From sequence record NC_042018.1: 64,000 bases of DNA; one strand, written 5' to 3'. The position numbers and the translations under genes were made by a program. Position 1 is the stretch's first letter. Each line of letters opens with the position of its first letter. The notes under the pieces are model-generated. The model had not been told where the DNA came from, made no database searches, and saw only the letters and a list, made by a program, of their open reading frames with translations. Shown piece after piece: positions 5,469-23,864 of the stretch.

Positions 5469-6533
5469 ATGGAACTGGGTGAAGAAGAGCTGGGTAGCGG
5501 GATTCCGGATGTTGAGCATATCGACACGGTCATGGACGGCATTATCGATACGGTAACGGGGACCGAGGGGTTAACCCATGCTCAACGTTATTTGGCAGGT
5601 ACGTTGTATGCCAGCGGCATGGTGTCCTATTCGCAGTACCATGGTAGCGAAGGGGTGATGGATACCATCAAAGGGGGATTGAAGAAAGCCTGGGATTACA
5701 TCGTGAAGATGTTTAAACAAATCTGGGGTTTCTTCTTTAAATCGAAAGGTAAACAGGAAGCGGCTGACGCCAAGGCTGCAGTTAGACAGCTGGAAGAGTT
5801 TAGCAATCTGCGTCCTGTTAAATCAGAAGATCGCCGTCGCGCGGTTACTGAAATGGTGAGGGCCGGTGCAAAGCTTGCGCACATGGATTTGGATAAAACC
5901 GATCCAAACGCTAAACGCGCCATGATGCAGCATCTCGAAGTAATGAAAGAGAAAAGCAAAGAGATGCAGCAACTGAGCCCGAACGAGAGCAGCAAAGAAG
6001 CGGCTATCGTTACCGAGGTTAAAAAGGAATTCCAGGAAATTTGTGTAGAGCACGTTAGCGTGAACCTGAGTAATCTCAAAACCAAAGTAGTGGCGAAACT
6101 TACTTCAATTTACGAAAACAACAAAAAGCTGGATGCACTCAAAACCGACACGAGTAAGGATTTGGGTATTACTTGGTTAAAAGGAATTTCGCGTAATATT
6201 GATCGGTTCATTAGTGATATGCGAACCTTTTCAACCGTGTTAGAAGAGTTCCGTTCGACTGAACACGCCAGCAGCTTTGCAAGTAAACTCAAGGGTTACA
6301 TTTCACACATGGAAACCCTCATGGAGAGCTGCGCCAAAACGGAAAATGCGGTTCGTGAATTGATGCGTACTCTTGAGAAAGAGTTAGCAGAAAATCCTAA
6401 TGATCCACAAGTAGCTGCTTTGTTGAATCATGTAAAGACCGGCTTGAAGCTGTCAGCTGAAGTAGCCGAAACAGTAAGTTGGTTATTGCGTGTCACTACC
6501 CAGCTTTGCGATCGCTACTCCGTAAAAGCATAA
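5469..6533 (+). CDS. head/ejection protein of a paralog family with a G-x-E propeptide
   Basis: 354 aa. N-terminus GIIDTVTGTEG...AQRYL...YHGSEGVMDTIKGG is visibly homologous to the N-terminus of 7837..8751. Confidence 0.6.
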   Translation: MELGEEELGSGIPDVEHIDTVMDGIIDTVTGTEGLTHAQRYLAGTLYASGMVSYSQYHGSEGVMDTIKGGLKKAWDYIVKMFKQIWGFFFKSKGKQEAADAKAAVRQLEEFSNLRPVKSEDRRRAVTEMVRAGAKLAHMDLDKTDPNAKRAMMQHLEVMKEKSKEMQQLSPNESSKEAAIVTEVKKEFQEICVEHVSVNLSNLKTKVVAKLTSIYENNKKLDALKTDTSKDLGITWLKGISRNIDRFISDMRTFSTVLEEFRSTEHASSFASKLKGYISHMETLMESCAKTENAVRELMRTLEKELAENPNDPQVAALLNHVKTGLKLSAEVAETVSWLLRVTTQLCDRYSVKA

Positions 6534-6611
6534 TAAGTCCCCCACTAGTAAATTACCAGGAGCTCTATGCATTGTGAGCTCCTGTTTTACTTTTCGTTCT
6601 AAGGAATAAAA

Positions 6612-7337
6612 ATGCCGTACATCGTTATTGAGGGGGTGGACTTTAGCGGTAAGTCTACACTGGCCTCAGCTTTAAAAACACAGCTAAAACTCCAATACGG
6701 TGTGGAGTCGGTAATCGTTGAAGAGCCGTCTACCCACAACGATCGTTGTAAAGCCATTCGTCACGAAGTGACCACCAATCCAACCCTGACCAATGAAGAG
6801 CGCGCTGCGCTGTTTCTGGAACAACGTCAGCTGGTTATGCAGGACCTGGTTCTGCCTGCCCTGAAAGCCGGTAAACTGGTTATCGGTAGCCGTTCGTTTA
6901 TCAGCACCATGGTATACCAGACTCCAGAAAACGGTTTCGGTATGCACGGTGTGCTGAATGCCAATTTAGACGGCCTGGAAGCCTTTGGGGACGACGCAAT
7001 TCCTGACCTGGGGATTCTGTGCGAAATTACGCACGATACGTTCCTGAAGCGTTGTACGGGCCGTAATGGGTATATGGATGAACTGGAAATGCCGTTACTG
7101 GATCCGGTGAAGTTCGCCACCCGCTGTGAGAAATATCTCAAGGCCATGGTATATACCAAAACCGCGCTGAAGAAATTCGACAGTGCGATGTATAGCGGTG
7201 ACCTGGACATGCTGTTAGCAGACCTGGCCCGTAAATTCAAATATGAGAAACTGCCTGAAGAAGGCGAAGTCTCTTCTCTTACTCCACCTCCGGCCAAACC
7301 CGAAGTAAAAGGGGTTGCCTCTTACCTGGTACCGTAA
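6612..7337 (+). CDS. tmk: thymidylate (dTMP) kinase
   Basis: P-loop IEGVDFSGKST, an EP motif, and SRSFISTMVYQ matching the DR(Y/F)xxS..YQ motif. Confidence 0.88.
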   Translation: MPYIVIEGVDFSGKSTLASALKTQLKLQYGVESVIVEEPSTHNDRCKAIRHEVTTNPTLTNEERAALFLEQRQLVMQDLVLPALKAGKLVIGSRSFISTMVYQTPENGFGMHGVLNANLDGLEAFGDDAIPDLGILCEITHDTFLKRCTGRNGYMDELEMPLLDPVKFATRCEKYLKAMVYTKTALKKFDSAMYSGDLDMLLADLARKFKYEKLPEEGEVSSLTPPPAKPEVKGVASYLVP

Positions 7338-7339
7338 AC

Positions 7340-7711
7340 ATGGAAAAAGCACAAAACATCGAAAAGGGTCTTTCCTTTGGGCAAGTCATTGAACGCATGA
7401 AGCGTTTTAAAGGCGAAGCAGCACTGCGCGCTTGGGGTGACAAAAAGGAATGTGTCTTCCTGGTCACTCATCATGATCTCTGCACGAAACTGGGCTACGG
7501 CTACGGTGAAGTTCCCGGGACGGCTTCTTTTGGGGATGCTTTGTGCAAATACCATGAAAGCGGGGAACTGGAAATGGGCTGGCGTCCGAGCTATGCTGAG
7601 ATGGCGTCAAACGACTGGCAGTTTGTGAATTGCGGGGAACGCGATGACATCTATCGTAAATCCAACGACGCTGGCGAAGCTGGGAAAAGTCGTGACGGCT
7701 TTGCCGCCTGA
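7340..7711 (+). CDS. tad2: DUF2829 / Tad2-like immune-signal sponge protein
   Basis: LSFGQVIERMK...RAW...FLV...LGYGYGE...WRPSYAEMASNDWQFV follows the DUF2829/Tad2 pattern (SFGEAL..RxGW..FGFGE..WxPSQxDxLAxDW). Confidence 0.72.
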   Translation: MEKAQNIEKGLSFGQVIERMKRFKGEAALRAWGDKKECVFLVTHHDLCTKLGYGYGEVPGTASFGDALCKYHESGELEMGWRPSYAEMASNDWQFVNCGERDDIYRKSNDAGEAGKSRDGFAA

Positions 7712-7802
7712 AAGACCGGCTCCGTGTAGTACGGGTGCAAACCTGATTAAAAAGGCTAATCCACCCAAACAGTTTAATTTTGATATTAAACCCAAATAAT
7801 AA

Positions 7803-7834
7803 ATACTCTCTCAGCCGTGGCTGAGAGAGTATAA
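7803..7834. terminator. bidirectional terminator hairpin
   Basis: ATACTCTCTCAG-ccgtgg-CTGAGAGAGTAT between convergent genes. Confidence 0.6.
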
Positions 7835-7836
7835 CG

Positions 7837-8751
7837 TTATGCGTGGAATTTGTTGTACAGCTGATTAAACAGACTGAGTTGCTTGTTGAACGTGTTGTAT
7901 TCAAACGTAGCGCACGCAATATCTTTACGCGCCTGGTCGGCTAACTCTTTCATGTTCTGTCGATAATGGTCACTGAGGTCCGTCTGTTTTAACGTTGCCT
8001 CAATTTCGCTAAGGTTCTTCTTCTGATCGTCGATTACCTTTTGAACACTCTTTTCATATTCAGACAAGTCTTTCTGCGTCACACGATTAAGTGTGTTTAA
8101 GAAAGTCGTAATACCGCCATGATGGAAAATGTTCGGCACAGTCTTATGCAGCTCAGGGAGCGCACTGGTTAAACGTTCCTGCAGACGACGAAGCGGTGAC
8201 ACATACTTAACTTTGTTCTTGCTCGTGTAGTCCGTGTATGCTTTATTCAGCTCACCGAGTTTATTCAGCAGCTGTTCAATCTGATTGTGCTCACCATTGT
8301 AAATTGCAGTGCGTCTTTTGCTGCCATCTTTCTTAACGATCAAGACTTCTTTTTCCTGGGCAGCAGCTTCCTGTTCTTTCTTCAGTTCGGCATCTTTAGA
8401 GATAGCGGCGTCAGATTCCTTTACCTGCTCAGTGGTTTCTTTTGCGTTCTCTTCTACCTTTGCGCCTTTCTTACCGGTGAAGACTTCTTTCAGCTTAGTC
8501 CATAGCGCTTCCATGGCTGTTTTGATTGCCTGGTACACTTTCTGTGCCCCTGACTTGATTGTGTCAAGCACACCCTCATTACCGTGGTAGTTGGAAATCG
8601 TTCCGCCGTAGGACCGCACAACAGACTGCAGGTACTGCTGAGCGTACGTTAAGGAGTAACGCTCGGTACCGTCCACCGTATCAATAATACCGGTGAGCAG
8701 GGTCTCCGCGTGGTCGCTGTCCATTTCTTCGTAAACACCATCGAGTTGCAT
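7837..8751 (-). CDS. head/ejection protein paralog with a G-x-E propeptide
   Basis: 304 aa. GIIDTVDGTE...YAQQYL...YHGNEGVLDTIKSG, paralogous to 5469..6533. Confidence 0.6.
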   Translation of the reverse strand: MQLDGVYEEMDSDHAETLLTGIIDTVDGTERYSLTYAQQYLQSVVRSYGGTISNYHGNEGVLDTIKSGAQKVYQAIKTAMEALWTKLKEVFTGKKGAKVEENAKETTEQVKESDAAISKDAELKKEQEAAAQEKEVLIVKKDGSKRRTAIYNGEHNQIEQLLNKLGELNKAYTDYTSKNKVKYVSPLRRLQERLTSALPELHKTVPNIFHHGGITTFLNTLNRVTQKDLSEYEKSVQKVIDDQKKNLSEIEATLKQTDLSDHYRQNMKELADQARKDIACATFEYNTFNKQLSLFNQLYNKFHA

Positions 8752-9149
8752 GATTTTATCCTGTTAGTTTAGTTCATAAAATTTCGCGCATATCTCCCCC
8801 TCCTTGCCCCGTCTTAGGGGGCAAGGAGGTATTACAGTATGGGAGGGACGAGCGAGGAATTACTAAACTGTAATAGGTATAAAACCCAGTTAGTTATTTT
8901 TAAGCAACTGTAAGGTTATCTACTCTGTAGGCTCTTAACCATTAACTAAGGTTTAACGTTAAGGCGGTTCAGTTCTTGCAGATTAAGTAATTTTCTACTA
9001 CGTGGTAATATACATATACCGGCTGTAATGATTTACCACCACGACCATATTATATTTTTATTTTCTATAAGTTTTCAAACCTGTACTATTAGGGTGAATC
9101 TGAATCCCATATTTAGGTTCGTAACTTAACTTTGAATAGGACTGAGAAA

Positions 9150-14451: not shown

Positions 14452-15417
14452 ATGTCTGAATTACAATACTACCTGTGTGGCGGCGCTGGCATCTCTATCG
14501 GTGTGGCTCTGAAACAACAGACCAACACGGCGGCTAACCGCACAGCTAAGATGGTCGGCATCGACAGCTCTGACCGCAACGACTCTGACGGCCTCTTCCC
14601 GGTAGTACGTATGGAAGGCACGCGCGGTTCTGGTAAAGTGAAATCCACCAACGCCGAACCGATGAAACCGTTCCTGGCAGAAGTGCTGACCCAACACAAA
14701 CCGGCCAGCTTCAACATCATCGTCTGTAACGCCGCTGGCGGTACCGGTTCCCTGATGGCAACCTACCTGCTTCAGAAACTCGTCGCTGCAGGTAAAGTGG
14801 TATTCCTCTGCCTGGCATCTGACGAGACCAGTCAGAAAGAGTTCGAGAACGTCATCTCCACCAAACGTTCTTTCGCTGCCCAGACTGAGAAAAACCAACT
14901 CGACGTGCCGGTTCCGTATCTGGACATTGTTCAGACGCCGGACATGACCCGTGGTGATGCAAACCGCCGTATCGTTAACCAGCTCGATCTGTTGAGCCTG
15001 TTCGCAACTGAAACCAATGAAGAAGTGGATTATCAAGACATCTTGTCTATGGTCCGCTACTCCAAAACCTGTAACGTTGCGCCGGCGCTGAGCAAAATCA
15101 CTTTCCACGATCAGGAAACGGCCCGCTCCTATACCGGTAAAGTTCCGGTAGCAGTGTGCTCGCTGTTTGATAACCGCGACGCGGTAGCGCCGTTGTTTGA
15201 AGGTTGCGTATACCGTGCAACCGGTGTGTTCAACAAATCCAACAACCCACCGGCTGATCTGAAAGAGATTCACATGGTCTTTGACCACGGTGAAGCAATC
15301 GACGAGCTGAAGGAGCGCATGGAATTGCTGAACGACCGCAAAATCGTAACAGCCAACAAGTACTCTGAAGTTGACAAAGTCAGCGACGGTGCCGACGATT
15401 CCGGCGTGTTCTACTAA
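14452..15417 (+). CDS. phuZ: PhuZ phage tubulin
   Basis: CGGAGISIG nucleotide-binding loop, AAGGTGS tubulin signature, acidic C-terminal tail DDSGVFY, ~321 aa. ATG 14452 follows AAGGAG. Confidence 0.92.
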   Translation: MSELQYYLCGGAGISIGVALKQQTNTAANRTAKMVGIDSSDRNDSDGLFPVVRMEGTRGSGKVKSTNAEPMKPFLAEVLTQHKPASFNIIVCNAAGGTGSLMATYLLQKLVAAGKVVFLCLASDETSQKEFENVISTKRSFAAQTEKNQLDVPVPYLDIVQTPDMTRGDANRRIVNQLDLLSLFATETNEEVDYQDILSMVRYSKTCNVAPALSKITFHDQETARSYTGKVPVAVCSLFDNRDAVAPLFEGCVYRATGVFNKSNNPPADLKEIHMVFDHGEAIDELKERMELLNDRKIVTANKYSEVDKVSDGADDSGVFY

Positions 15418-21878: not shown

Positions 21879-23864
21879 ATGTCTTTAAACAACAGCTCTA
21901 ACTGGAATGGCGGCAACAAGGAAGAAAACAACCAGTCTGGTCAGAACGCGGGTTCTCAGAACACCAATGCTCAGGGCCTGGTTGGTCTGTTCCAGCAGAC
22001 GTCCATGACGTCTGATAACCGTAACCTCAAAGACGTCACCGACGTCCGTGAACAAATCATCGAGTTCTACAAAACTCAGAAGTCCTCCACGACCTCTCAG
22101 CTGCAGCAGCAAATCATTCCGGAAGTGGAAGCGATGACCGCCACCATTTCTCCGCAGCTGCCGGGCCTGTGTTTCTACCGCGAAATCCAGGGCCAGATGT
22201 ACGTGATGGGCGTCCTGTTCTCCAACAACAACCTGGCGATCTCTACTGAGCAAATCAACGTTGCCGGTTTCGGTGGCAATGGTTCTCAGCGCGTGTCTAT
22301 TCCGCTGACGCCGGCTGACTATGCAAACGGTCAGGTTATCGAAGGTATCCGTAACCACTACCGCAGCGTAGCATCAGCACGTCAGATTAACACCGTCAAC
22401 ATCATCAACGTTGTCGTGGCTGATCTGGAAATGTACACCCACGCTGAAATCGTTGACGCGGCTAACCGCATCGACACCATCGCCAACTGGCTGACCCGTG
22501 AGTGGGAAGAAGCGATCCTGGTTAAAGCGGCCGAGCAGGCAACTGCTGCGCAGATTTCTCTGCCGTCTCCGTTCAAAGAGAACAAACCGTTCGGCAACAA
22601 CAACGCCGCAGAAGCGCGCGTCAACGTTGTTAGCGGCCGTCTGAACACGGCGCGTCAGCTGTCTCCGGCGAACATGGAAGTCATCGTGTCTACCATGAAC
22701 CCGAACAGCAACAGCCAGTCTCAGAACAGCAAAGAAATCGCTCGTATCAAAGCGACGGTTTCCCTGAAAGGCGTCTCCTTCCAGGAGCACCAGCAGGCGC
22801 TGATGGCGAACCAGAACGCACAGCAGAACTTCATGCAAATGATGGGTCTGGGTGGTTCGGTTTACCCGAACGGCTACCGTCCGCTGCGTCCGGTTATCAC
22901 TCTGGACCAGGTCCAGTCTGGTGAGCAGATGAACTACAACGGCGGTCTGGCTCCGTACTTCTTCGGCCTGTTTGCCCTGATGTGCACCAACAACAACTAC
23001 GTGTTCGCAGAAGCTCTGCGTCGTGTAAGCGTTGGCGCTCGTGGCAACCTGTCTGATCTGGAAGTGCGTATCAACCAACTGCTGCAGGGTTCCGGTGTGC
23101 CTAACCCGCAGAACCGTATCCAGCTGACTGACAAAACCATCTCTGACACCGACGTGGTGAACCAGTGGATTCGTCAGAACGTCGCTCCGCACGCAACCTT
23201 CCAGACCAACCTGGTACTGCGCGGCGTGAACGGCTCTGTTAACAACTTCCTGCTGCGTCTCGCAGGTGGTGCTGGTCGCGGTGAAGCGATTAACACGGTT
23301 GTTAACTGCCTGGATGCAATCTCCAACGGCGCGGCATCTACCCTGATCGCTCGCAACCACACCTCCGGCAAAGGCTGGACCAAAGACAAGCCGATTCTGC
23401 ACCGTACCGCAGAAATCGCTATCAACGGTCTGGCGACTTACGGCGACAAACAGCTGAACACGCTGGAAATCGACGAAATGCTGCTGGGTCACGTGAAGGG
23501 CAAAAATGGTATCAACGCCATTGCTGACTTCCTCCGCGTGCAGTACGGCACCGACAACGAAGAGTTCAAGTCTCGTGCGCAGAAACTGCGTATCCAGCTG
23601 AACGAATCGCTGTTCGACGGCGCAGTGCACATCAACAACTTCTCTCAGGTTCACATCTGGGATCCGCTGTTCATGCAGCTGCTGGGTGAGTGCATGGCTG
23701 ATATCGGCGCAATGAACGTCGCTAACAACCTGGGCTCGTTCCGTACTACTAACCTGGTCTACGCACCGGGCGCTGGTCTGGCAACCTACGCTTCTGCTGG
23801 CAGCAACGGTAACGTTGGCGGCATGATGGCGTCTGGTTTCTTTAACGGTGTACCGTTCGCGTAA
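21879..23864 (+). CDS. chmA: chimallin, phage nucleus shell protein
   Basis: 661 aa, extreme codon optimisation, disordered N-terminal segment and a C-terminal segment ending in an aromatic residue. Lies between the DNA polymerase and nvRNAP beta'-N, the phiKZ gp54 position. Confidence 0.85.
   Translation: MSLNNSSNWNGGNKEENNQSGQNAGSQNTNAQGLVGLFQQTSMTSDNRNLKDVTDVREQIIEFYKTQKSSTTSQLQQQIIPEVEAMTATISPQLPGLCFYREIQGQMYVMGVLFSNNNLAISTEQINVAGFGGNGSQRVSIPLTPADYANGQVIEGIRNHYRSVASARQINTVNIINVVVADLEMYTHAEIVDAANRIDTIANWLTREWEEAILVKAAEQATAAQISLPSPFKENKPFGNNNAAEARVNVVSGRLNTARQLSPANMEVIVSTMNPNSNSQSQNSKEIARIKATVSLKGVSFQEHQQALMANQNAQQNFMQMMGLGGSVYPNGYRPLRPVITLDQVQSGEQMNYNGGLAPYFFGLFALMCTNNNYVFAEALRRVSVGARGNLSDLEVRINQLLQGSGVPNPQNRIQLTDKTISDTDVVNQWIRQNVAPHATFQTNLVLRGVNGSVNNFLLRLAGGAGRGEAINTVVNCLDAISNGAASTLIARNHTSGKGWTKDKPILHRTAEIAINGLATYGDKQLNTLEIDEMLLGHVKGKNGINAIADFLRVQYGTDNEEFKSRAQKLRIQLNESLFDGAVHINNFSQVHIWDPLFMQLLGECMADIGAMNVANNLGSFRTTNLVYAPGAGLATYASAGSNGNVGGMMASGFFNGVPFA

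Follow-up and report, generated by a model that had tools for sequence, protein, structure and literature searches.

What does a Tad2-family protein bind when much of its ligand pocket has been substituted, and why would a nucleus-forming phage carry one? These questions are raised by the gene product gp7 of Erwinia phage vB_EamM_RisingSun. The window analyzed here is bases 1-64000 of the 235-kilobase (kb) genome of this phage (NC_042018.1 / MF459646.1), and its stretch 6000-9000 is 100% identical to both RisingSun records, with equal coordinates. Tad2 proteins are sponges whose ligands vary with the homologue: the forms of cyclic ADP-ribose (cADPR) called 3'cADPR and 2'cADPR (glycocyclic ADP-ribose, gcADPR), histidine-linked ADP-ribose (His-ADPR), N7-cADPR, the cyclic mononucleotides cUMP and cCMP, and dinucleotides. 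Judged by its sequence, gp7 is a new divergent member of this family with an uncommon pocket signature. We favor the view, and hold it to be reasonably probable, that gp7 is a divergent Tad2 sponge that traps a nucleotide-derived alarm signal in a rebuilt pocket, with a change of ligand or of ligand pose.

Identity and Fold of gp7

The gene, its domain and the gene ahead of it are as follows.

7340..7711, plus strand: coding sequence (CDS) of gp7, a Tad2/DUF2829-family protein; an open reading frame (ORF) of 123 amino acids (aa) plus stop, with a PF11195 match.
7373..7627, plus strand: Tad2-like domain, residues 12-96, comprising helix alpha1, the beta-sheet and two short helices; limits from the Pfam envelope.
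6612..7337, plus strand: gp6, the true thymidylate kinase; PF02223 at 76 bits; phrog_761.

The original prediction, made from the sequence alone, described this ORF correctly and assigned its product to the Tad2/DUF2829 family, an assignment that is upheld by both sequence and structure searches. With the Pfam profile PF11195 (Tad2-like), a search proposed along with the prediction, gp7 scores 37.4 bits (E 3.7e-9), above the gathering cut-off of 25 bits, and the match extends over residues 12-96 and profile positions 2-73 of 73. A six-frame search of the whole 235-kb genome finds PF11195 in gp7 only (37.7 bits, 7373-7627). Among PDB chains, phmmer ranks SPO1 Tad2 first (E 1.9e-6), followed by SptTad2 and HgmTad2/AcrIIA7. 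A profile built from gp7 and its homologues recovers every solved Tad2, ModTad2 included (E 2e-34 to 8e-20), and one built from the variant group described below matches SPO1 Tad2 at E 5.6e-18.

The structural comparison, likewise proposed earlier, was made with a single-chain AlphaFold2 model computed from a 29-sequence alignment. The model has a mean predicted local distance difference test score (pLDDT) of 86.7, with ten-residue block means of 78-98 across residues 1-100, and its elements follow the order expected for Tad2 (helices H, strands E: H13-22, E23-29, E38-42, H44-51, E67-71, E77-79, H85-89 and E93-100). Helices alpha1 and alpha2, which build the interfaces of the Tad2 tetramer, are both present in it. 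In a Foldseek search of the PDB the top 20 matches are all Tad2 chains, beyond which E-values exceed 0.1; the best structural match is SPO1 Tad2, with a template modeling score (TM-score), normalized to the target, of 0.78-0.87. On these sequence and model data, gp7 belongs to the Tad2/DUF2829 family and has the Tad2 fold.

The databases say otherwise. In the GenBank and RefSeq records of RisingSun, and in the record of the phage Joad, the product is named "putative thymidylate kinase" (the Joad counterpart, MF459647.1 7316-7687, being mislabeled likewise). We reject gp7 as a thymidylate kinase: a Pfam scan carried to E 10 yields PF11195 alone, without PF02223, and the true kinase is gp6, so the label is wrong. 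It probably spread from the adjoining kinase gene, whose stop codon lies 2 nucleotides (nt) ahead of the gp7 start. The entries for gp7 in RisingSun and Joad can thus be corrected to a Tad2-family protein.

The Ligand Pocket

In SPO1 Tad2, W25 and W73 provide van der Waals contacts to 1''-3' gcADPR, N26 and D79 bind its phosphate and hydroxyl groups, and the adenine is held by a hydrogen bond with T78 and by nonpolar contacts with I63 and T65; N26, D67, H71, W73, S76 and D79 coordinate water (Yirmiya et al.). Residues of SPO1 Tad2 were mapped to gp7 by HMMER (phmmer) alignment, which places the pocket in four short segments of the gene.

7433..7450, plus strand: pocket loop between beta1 and beta2, W32-G33-D34-K35-K36-E37 (by alignment to SPO1 Tad2).
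7490..7510, plus strand: the loop L51-G-Y-G-Y-G-E57, the family motif G-[YF]-G-[YF]-G-E within a short, SPO1-type insertion (from the sequence).
7547..7555, plus strand: strand residues K70-Y71-H72 (by alignment to SPO1 Tad2).
7580..7618, plus strand: the segment WRPSYAEMASNDW, residues 81-93, running from W81 through S84, Y85, A86 and E87 to W93 (by alignment to SPO1 Tad2).

Both motifs named in the original prediction, LGYGYGE (residues 51-57) and WRPSYAEMASNDW, are thus present where they were said to be. Both Trp clamps of the pocket and two further residues are kept: W25, W73, S76 and W85 of SPO1 Tad2 correspond to W32, W81, S84 and W93 of gp7, and L51 stands where SPO1 Tad2 has F44. The remaining lining has been replaced extensively. 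Five positions that contact the ligand are substituted (N26 to G33, I63 to K70, T65 to H72, T78 to A86 and D79 to E87), as are two that coordinate water (D67 to S74 and H71 to M79). The earlier claim of a substituted pocket therefore held, and it understated the case, naming neither N26, I63, T65 and T78 nor D67 and H71. The two changes that it did name, Q-to-Y and D-to-E, are both real (Q77 to Y85, D79 to E87); of these, Q77 is not among the named ligand or water residues. The polar and adenine-contacting set of the canonical gcADPR-binding Tad2 proteins is accordingly absent from gp7, which leaves its family membership unaffected.

Tabulating the pocket columns over 61 aligned homologues separates what the family holds fixed from what varies. 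The W25 position (W32 in gp7) is invariant, that of W73 (W81) is Trp in 60 of the 61, W93 is invariant among the aligned homologues, and the loop Glu (E57) is conserved in 60. Asn26 is found in 49 homologues and Asp79 in 54. Eight of the 61 (gp7, P0002, P0012, P0016, P0021, P0028, P0032 and P0033) lack Asn26 and have in common a Glu37 (gp7 numbering) and a basic residue, Lys or Arg, in place of I63; each of these two features is confined to the same eight. Glu at the D79 position occurs in seven homologues, every one within this variant group. In the first 29 sequences, those without Asn26 tend to be those with Glu79 (Fisher p = 0.004, with kinship ignored). Because the substituted residues occur together and are conserved within the group, the pocket changes read as a coordinated, conserved re-lining and not as decay, as far as sequence can tell. 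The gp7 pocket gains the acidic residues D34, E37 and E87 together with Lys and His; we speculate that such a set of charges might accommodate a ligand whose adenine ring is cationic, or else another pose. Among the homologues, P0007 (1741 aa), P0009 (515 aa) and P0029 (1164 aa) contain 4-10 Tad2-like stretches each, as tandem DUF2829 arrays.

The variant group is rare by every sequence search made. A full HMMER pass with gp7 over 1.84 billion representatives found one near relative, P0002 (48% identity, E 9e-28), besides 29 distant ones, and a subfamily profile search of a 5.8-billion-protein index added only two further variant members. A word-index search with gp7 returned no match besides gp7 itself, and an IMG/VR scan returned none. 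Nor was gp7 found in the accessible portions of the Tad2 sets of Yirmiya (2023) and Hadary (2025), an absence to which we attach little weight. In the tree, gp7 and P0002 are firm sisters (support 100/97), whereas the node that joins them to P0012 and P0021 has weak support (79/87) and P0016 is placed elsewhere; the tree, then, does not establish one clade or a single origin for the eight variant sequences.

A Related Phage with Two Tad2 Paralogues

The gene for P0002 sits on L004, a metagenomic contig of 6.3 kb that comes from a related phage. Arranged along it are a gp5-like gene, a gene for thymidylate kinase (60% identical to gp6 in protein sequence), P0002, a small overlapping ORF and a second Tad2-like gene, so that the order of kinase followed by Tad2-like gene is common to RisingSun and L004 at 45-60% protein identity.

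L004:2910-3239, plus strand: second Tad2-like gene, 109 aa, with a longer insertion and a canonical W-N...S-x-x-D pocket.

This canonical copy lies two genes downstream of P0002, and the contig thus carries two Tad2 paralogues in tandem. That a phage keeps a variant and a canonical Tad2 side by side argues that the two are non-redundant, and suggests that they do different jobs. No other indirect evidence speaks as well as this pair for a changed specificity of the variant form.

Selection and Distribution

The Joad protein is identical to gp7, and the two genes differ by four nucleotides, all synonymous. The surroundings differ far more in places: between RisingSun and Joad, gp5 and gp8 diverge by 24% and 19% in nucleotide sequence, and gp6, gp7 and gp10 by 1-5%. 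Since the changes in gp7 are all synonymous amid neighbors that are 19-24% diverged, gp7 is, on this comparison, under purifying selection, and the gene looks real. Four unrelated metagenome runs from three studies (groundwater, food fermentation and one other) contain contigs that match gp7, and the gp5-gp8 stretch around it, at 96-98% identity; all four, those labeled "metatranscriptome" included, are assembled contigs, which show that relatives exist and do not show transcription of gp7. Further, partial matches are indexed for runs from roots, the mammal gut, the bear gut and wastewater. RisingSun-like phages appear to be widespread outside orchards.

In a tblastn search of 50,697 phage records, RisingSun and Joad alone matched gp7 at high identity. 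The 21 further records that matched hold distant Tad2 genes from unrelated phages, and none of them is another chimallivirus. Being single-copy and absent from the other chimallivirus records by tblastn, gp7 is best classed, from its distribution, as an accessory gene. Absence from other chimalliviruses is as expected for a counter-defense gene.

What gp7 May Sequester

In the mechanism that we propose, gp7 would be synthesized in the cytoplasm of the host and would assemble into a homotetramer. The pockets between its protomers would capture a small alarm molecule derived from a nucleotide and, with the signal trapped, the effector of a signaling-type defense would never be switched on. As the polar lining of the pocket appears to have been rebuilt coordinately, gp7 is expected to bind another ligand than the 1''-3' gcADPR of SPO1 Tad2, or to hold its ligand in another pose. 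Candidate ligands would be the ADP-ribose-derived signals of Toll/interleukin-1 receptor (TIR) proteins, namely 3'cADPR, 2'cADPR, N7-cADPR, canonical cADPR and His-ADPR. The tetramer, the ligand binding and the anti-defense role are inferred by analogy with characterized Tad2 proteins.

Several observations weigh against this proposal. With five ligand-contact and two water-coordinating residues changed, the pocket could be non-functional or repurposed. Three proteins of a published screen that have W-P in place of W-N, and so are without Asn26 (Tad2_69, Tad2_72 and Tad2_80), were inactive on all systems testable for them. A DefenseFinder survey of 317 genomes of E. amylovora, the known host, found restriction-modification, CRISPR (clustered regularly interspaced short palindromic repeats) type I-E and toxin-antitoxin systems to be common, and Pycsar and type I CBASS (cyclic-oligonucleotide-based antiphage signaling system) to be rare; its main text mentions neither Thoeris nor Tad2. 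Finally, variant genes adjoin nucleotide-metabolism or replication genes in three independent contexts, and such neighbors could point to a metabolic role.

How do the alternatives fare against the same evidence? The one that survives best holds gp7 to be an ordinary type I anti-Thoeris Tad2, still binding 1''-3'/1''-2' gcADPR in the same pocket with its specificity unchanged. We consider this rather unlikely, even though both Trp clamps and S76 are kept, the D-to-E change is conservative, SPO1 Tad2 is by far the nearest solved structure, and Li et al. judged the gcADPR site to be functional in about 99% of Tad2 proteins. A further argument in its favor comes from Tad2_79, which, when placed on the SPO1 positions by eye from Table S2 of Hadary et al., has W-S at the W25-N26 positions and Glu at position 79, and which was validated against both type I and type IV Thoeris (Hadary et al.). 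Since Tad2_79, with Ser26 and Glu79, still blocks type I Thoeris, the D-to-E change alone does not predict loss of gcADPR binding. In gp7, however, N26, I63, T65 and T78 are substituted too, a small number of homologues share the changes as a co-varying set, and the L004 phage holds a canonical copy beside its variant. The silence of the E. amylovora survey on Thoeris also speaks against a sponge for the type I signal.

A second alternative takes gp7 to be a nucleotide-binding accessory of phage pyrimidine metabolism that works with gp6, buffering or sensing a nucleotide, and has no part in counter-defense. The gene starts 2 nt past the stop of the dTMP (thymidine monophosphate) kinase gene, and the kinase-Tad2-like order is kept in L004 at a protein identity of only 45-60%; another variant gene lies 3.2 kb from a dCTP (deoxycytidine triphosphate) deaminase gene, and a third beside gyrase and primase genes. 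But RisingSun and L004 are related and share the gp5-like neighbor as well, so the order may be inherited, and the early regions of large lytic phages commonly mix metabolic and counter-defense genes. Inheritance and this usual mixing of early genes explain the kinase adjacency equally well as a metabolic role does. No metabolic role is known for any member of the Tad2 family, and the functional results of the Tad2 papers drawn on here concern the sequestration of immune signals, apart from an anti-CRISPR role that was proposed without a mechanism. A purely metabolic function is, in our estimation, very unlikely.

That gp7 keeps the Tad2 fold and has lost small-molecule binding, acting by protein contacts (inhibiting a host protein, for instance, as once proposed for AcrIIA7) or having no current function, is very doubtful: the heavy substitution of polar pocket residues, the inactivity of the W-P variants and the origin of the DUF2829 protein AcrIIA7 in an anti-CRISPR screen would all fit, but strict retention of the aromatic clamps and the loop Glu, and conservation of the substituted residues among the variant proteins, together argue for a maintained pocket; gp7 is under purifying selection; and AcrIIA7 itself turned out to be a sponge for gcADPR and dinucleotides.

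The favored reading, of a sponge with a changed ligand or pose, has a narrower form that we put forward as quite unlikely: gp7-type proteins would be a rare Tad2 subfamily whose re-lined, more charged pocket sequesters an immune signal that no known sponge takes up. Several TIR signals lack a known sponge, among them canonical cADPR and that of type IX. The type VII and type VIII Thoeris systems of Proteobacteria (Gammaproteobacteria) use canonical cADPR, and neither Tad1 nor MoTad2 neutralizes them. The sponge-less signal may be this canonical cADPR, or one that has yet to be described. If the narrower form were true, gp7 could be used as bait to isolate the signal molecule, as ModTad2 was used in the work that led to the discovery of His-ADPR. 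The small variant group with co-varying pocket residues would in any case provide a short list of candidate sponges.

The C-Terminal Tail and the Neighboring Genes

Downstream of the Tad2 domain lie the following features.

7628..7708, plus strand: C-terminal tail of gp7, residues 97-123, 27 aa, with low pLDDT.
7644..7799, plus strand: unannotated 51-aa ORF, overlapping the 3' end of gp7 in a different frame.
7803..7832, strand not assigned: terminator-like hairpin with a 13-base-pair stem, between the gp7/small-ORF unit and the convergent gp8.

The original prediction gave gp7 a C-terminal extension of about 35 aa, which is too long: 27 residues (97-123) lie beyond both the Tad2 domain and the end of SPO1 Tad2. 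In the AlphaFold2 model the pLDDT block means fall to 59-65 for residues 101-123, and the tail is probably largely disordered. It shares the motif R-D-D-[IV]-Y with P0002.

The small ORF overlaps the final 68 nt of the gp7 CDS, stop included (7644-7711). It has a counterpart at the equal position in L004 (2734-2910) with 16 of 24 N-terminal residues identical and, between RisingSun and L004, it is more conserved than the gp7 tail over the same DNA. In its non-overlapping part RisingSun and Joad differ by five nucleotides, four of them at third positions, with one residue change. No PHROG match was found for it. These comparisons make it probable that the ORF is a genuine small gene, which may account for some of the conservation seen in the gp7 tail. 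The 27-aa tail would then be a floppy appendage, its sequence probably constrained largely by the overlapping ORF. A fusion with the small ORF, or a frameshift into it, was considered and is unlikely, as both copies of the ORF have their own ATG.

The kinase-Tad2 pair is flanked by gp5 (5469-6533, plus strand) and gp8 (7837-8751, minus strand), which are paralogues. At their N termini they share a domain of some 110 aa, which has matches in several further PHROG families without an assigned function as well. Their divergence between RisingSun and Joad, given above, is unusually fast. The center of gp8 (7871-8299) is swapped for a diverged segment of equal length in two of the four metagenome runs (X3 and X7).

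A Nucleus-Forming Phage

Two further genes of the window bear on the nature of the phage.

21879..23864, plus strand: gp28, homologue of chimallin, the protein of the phage nuclear shell (RefSeq annotation and tblastn).
14452..15417, plus strand: gp17, PhuZ tubulin (annotation).

By tblastn, gp28 is 48% identical to a protein of phage EL and 28.9% identical to the product of an OBP gene annotated "nuclear shell protein"; it is homologous to the genes so named in OBP, Kc263 and other jumbo phages. A phmmer search of PDB chains and a Pfam scan gave no match for gp28, and the match of gp17 to the Pfam family TubZ_C_2 is weak (23 bits, under the cut-off of 27). Enterobacter phages described as close to RisingSun belong to the Chimalliviridae clade and have been seen to form a nucleus. 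With a chimallin homologue, PhuZ and relatives observed to form a nucleus, the nucleus-forming context supposed in the original prediction is well founded by homology.

Comparison with Known Sponges

SPO1 Tad2 (Gp34.65; PDB 8SME, 8SMF, 8SMG and 8WJE) is a type I anti-Thoeris sponge for 1''-3' and 1''-2' gcADPR. Like it, gp7 is a small stand-alone phage protein with a short insertion between beta2 and beta3 that bears the G-aromatic-G-aromatic-G-E loop, and it keeps the counterparts of W25, W73, W85 and S76. Unlike it, gp7 carries the substitutions N26G, I63K, T65H, D67S, H71M, T78A, D79E and F44L, an extra Glu37 and the 27-aa C-terminal tail, and is only 21-26% identical to it in the structure-based alignments of Foldseek; its host phage, moreover, is a nucleus-forming jumbo phage of a Gram-negative bacterium.

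HgmTad2/AcrIIA7 and SptTad2 (PDB 8KBI-8KBM, 8WJC and 8WJD) bind cyclic dinucleotides in addition to gcADPR, and their C-terminal W...S-x-x-[DE]...D-W segment aligns with that of gp7. They bind the dinucleotides cGG and cGAMP through an insertion domain of 35-41 aa; SPO1 Tad2, whose insertion measures 24 aa, did not bind any cyclic nucleotide among those tested. It is the SPO1 type that gp7 resembles: it aligns without a gap to the 24-aa insertion, the alignment with SptTad2 requires an 11-residue gap in gp7, and the long insertion domain of the dinucleotide-binding proteins, between beta2 and beta5, is missing. Because this insertion forms the dinucleotide pocket, the cyclic dinucleotides of CBASS, which the original prediction had entertained as ligands, are unlikely to be bound by gp7 in this way.

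The Tad2 scaffold has been retuned to differing immune signals before. ModTad2/MoTad2 (PDB 9EIB and 8V3E) sequesters His-ADPR, 2'cADPR and cUMP/cCMP, and Tad2_71 and Tad2_79 act on type IV Thoeris and its signal N7-cADPR. Tad2_79 resembles the gp7 group in having Glu for Asp79 and a replacement of Asn26 (by Ser). The likeness of ModTad2 to gp7 is weaker; it was missed by the single-sequence PDB search and has a Foldseek E-value of 2.8e-4. All three differ from gp7 in loop architecture, and none has the Glu37/Lys63 pair.

The closest parallel in logic is phiKZ Tad1. Here, too, a chimallivirus that shields its DNA has a sponge against signaling defenses, as we propose for RisingSun, although Tad1 is of a family unrelated to gp7 and is reported to be injected with the virion. 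The idea of a sponge in a nucleus-forming jumbo phage is thus already documented by phiKZ Tad1 and is not new. According to a 2026 review, phiKZ Tad1 is the sole anti-defense protein that has been described for jumbo phages. A candidate of the Tad2 type in another lineage of chimalliviruses would bring a second family of sponges to these phages, and would support the view that the phage nucleus gives no protection from signaling defenses.

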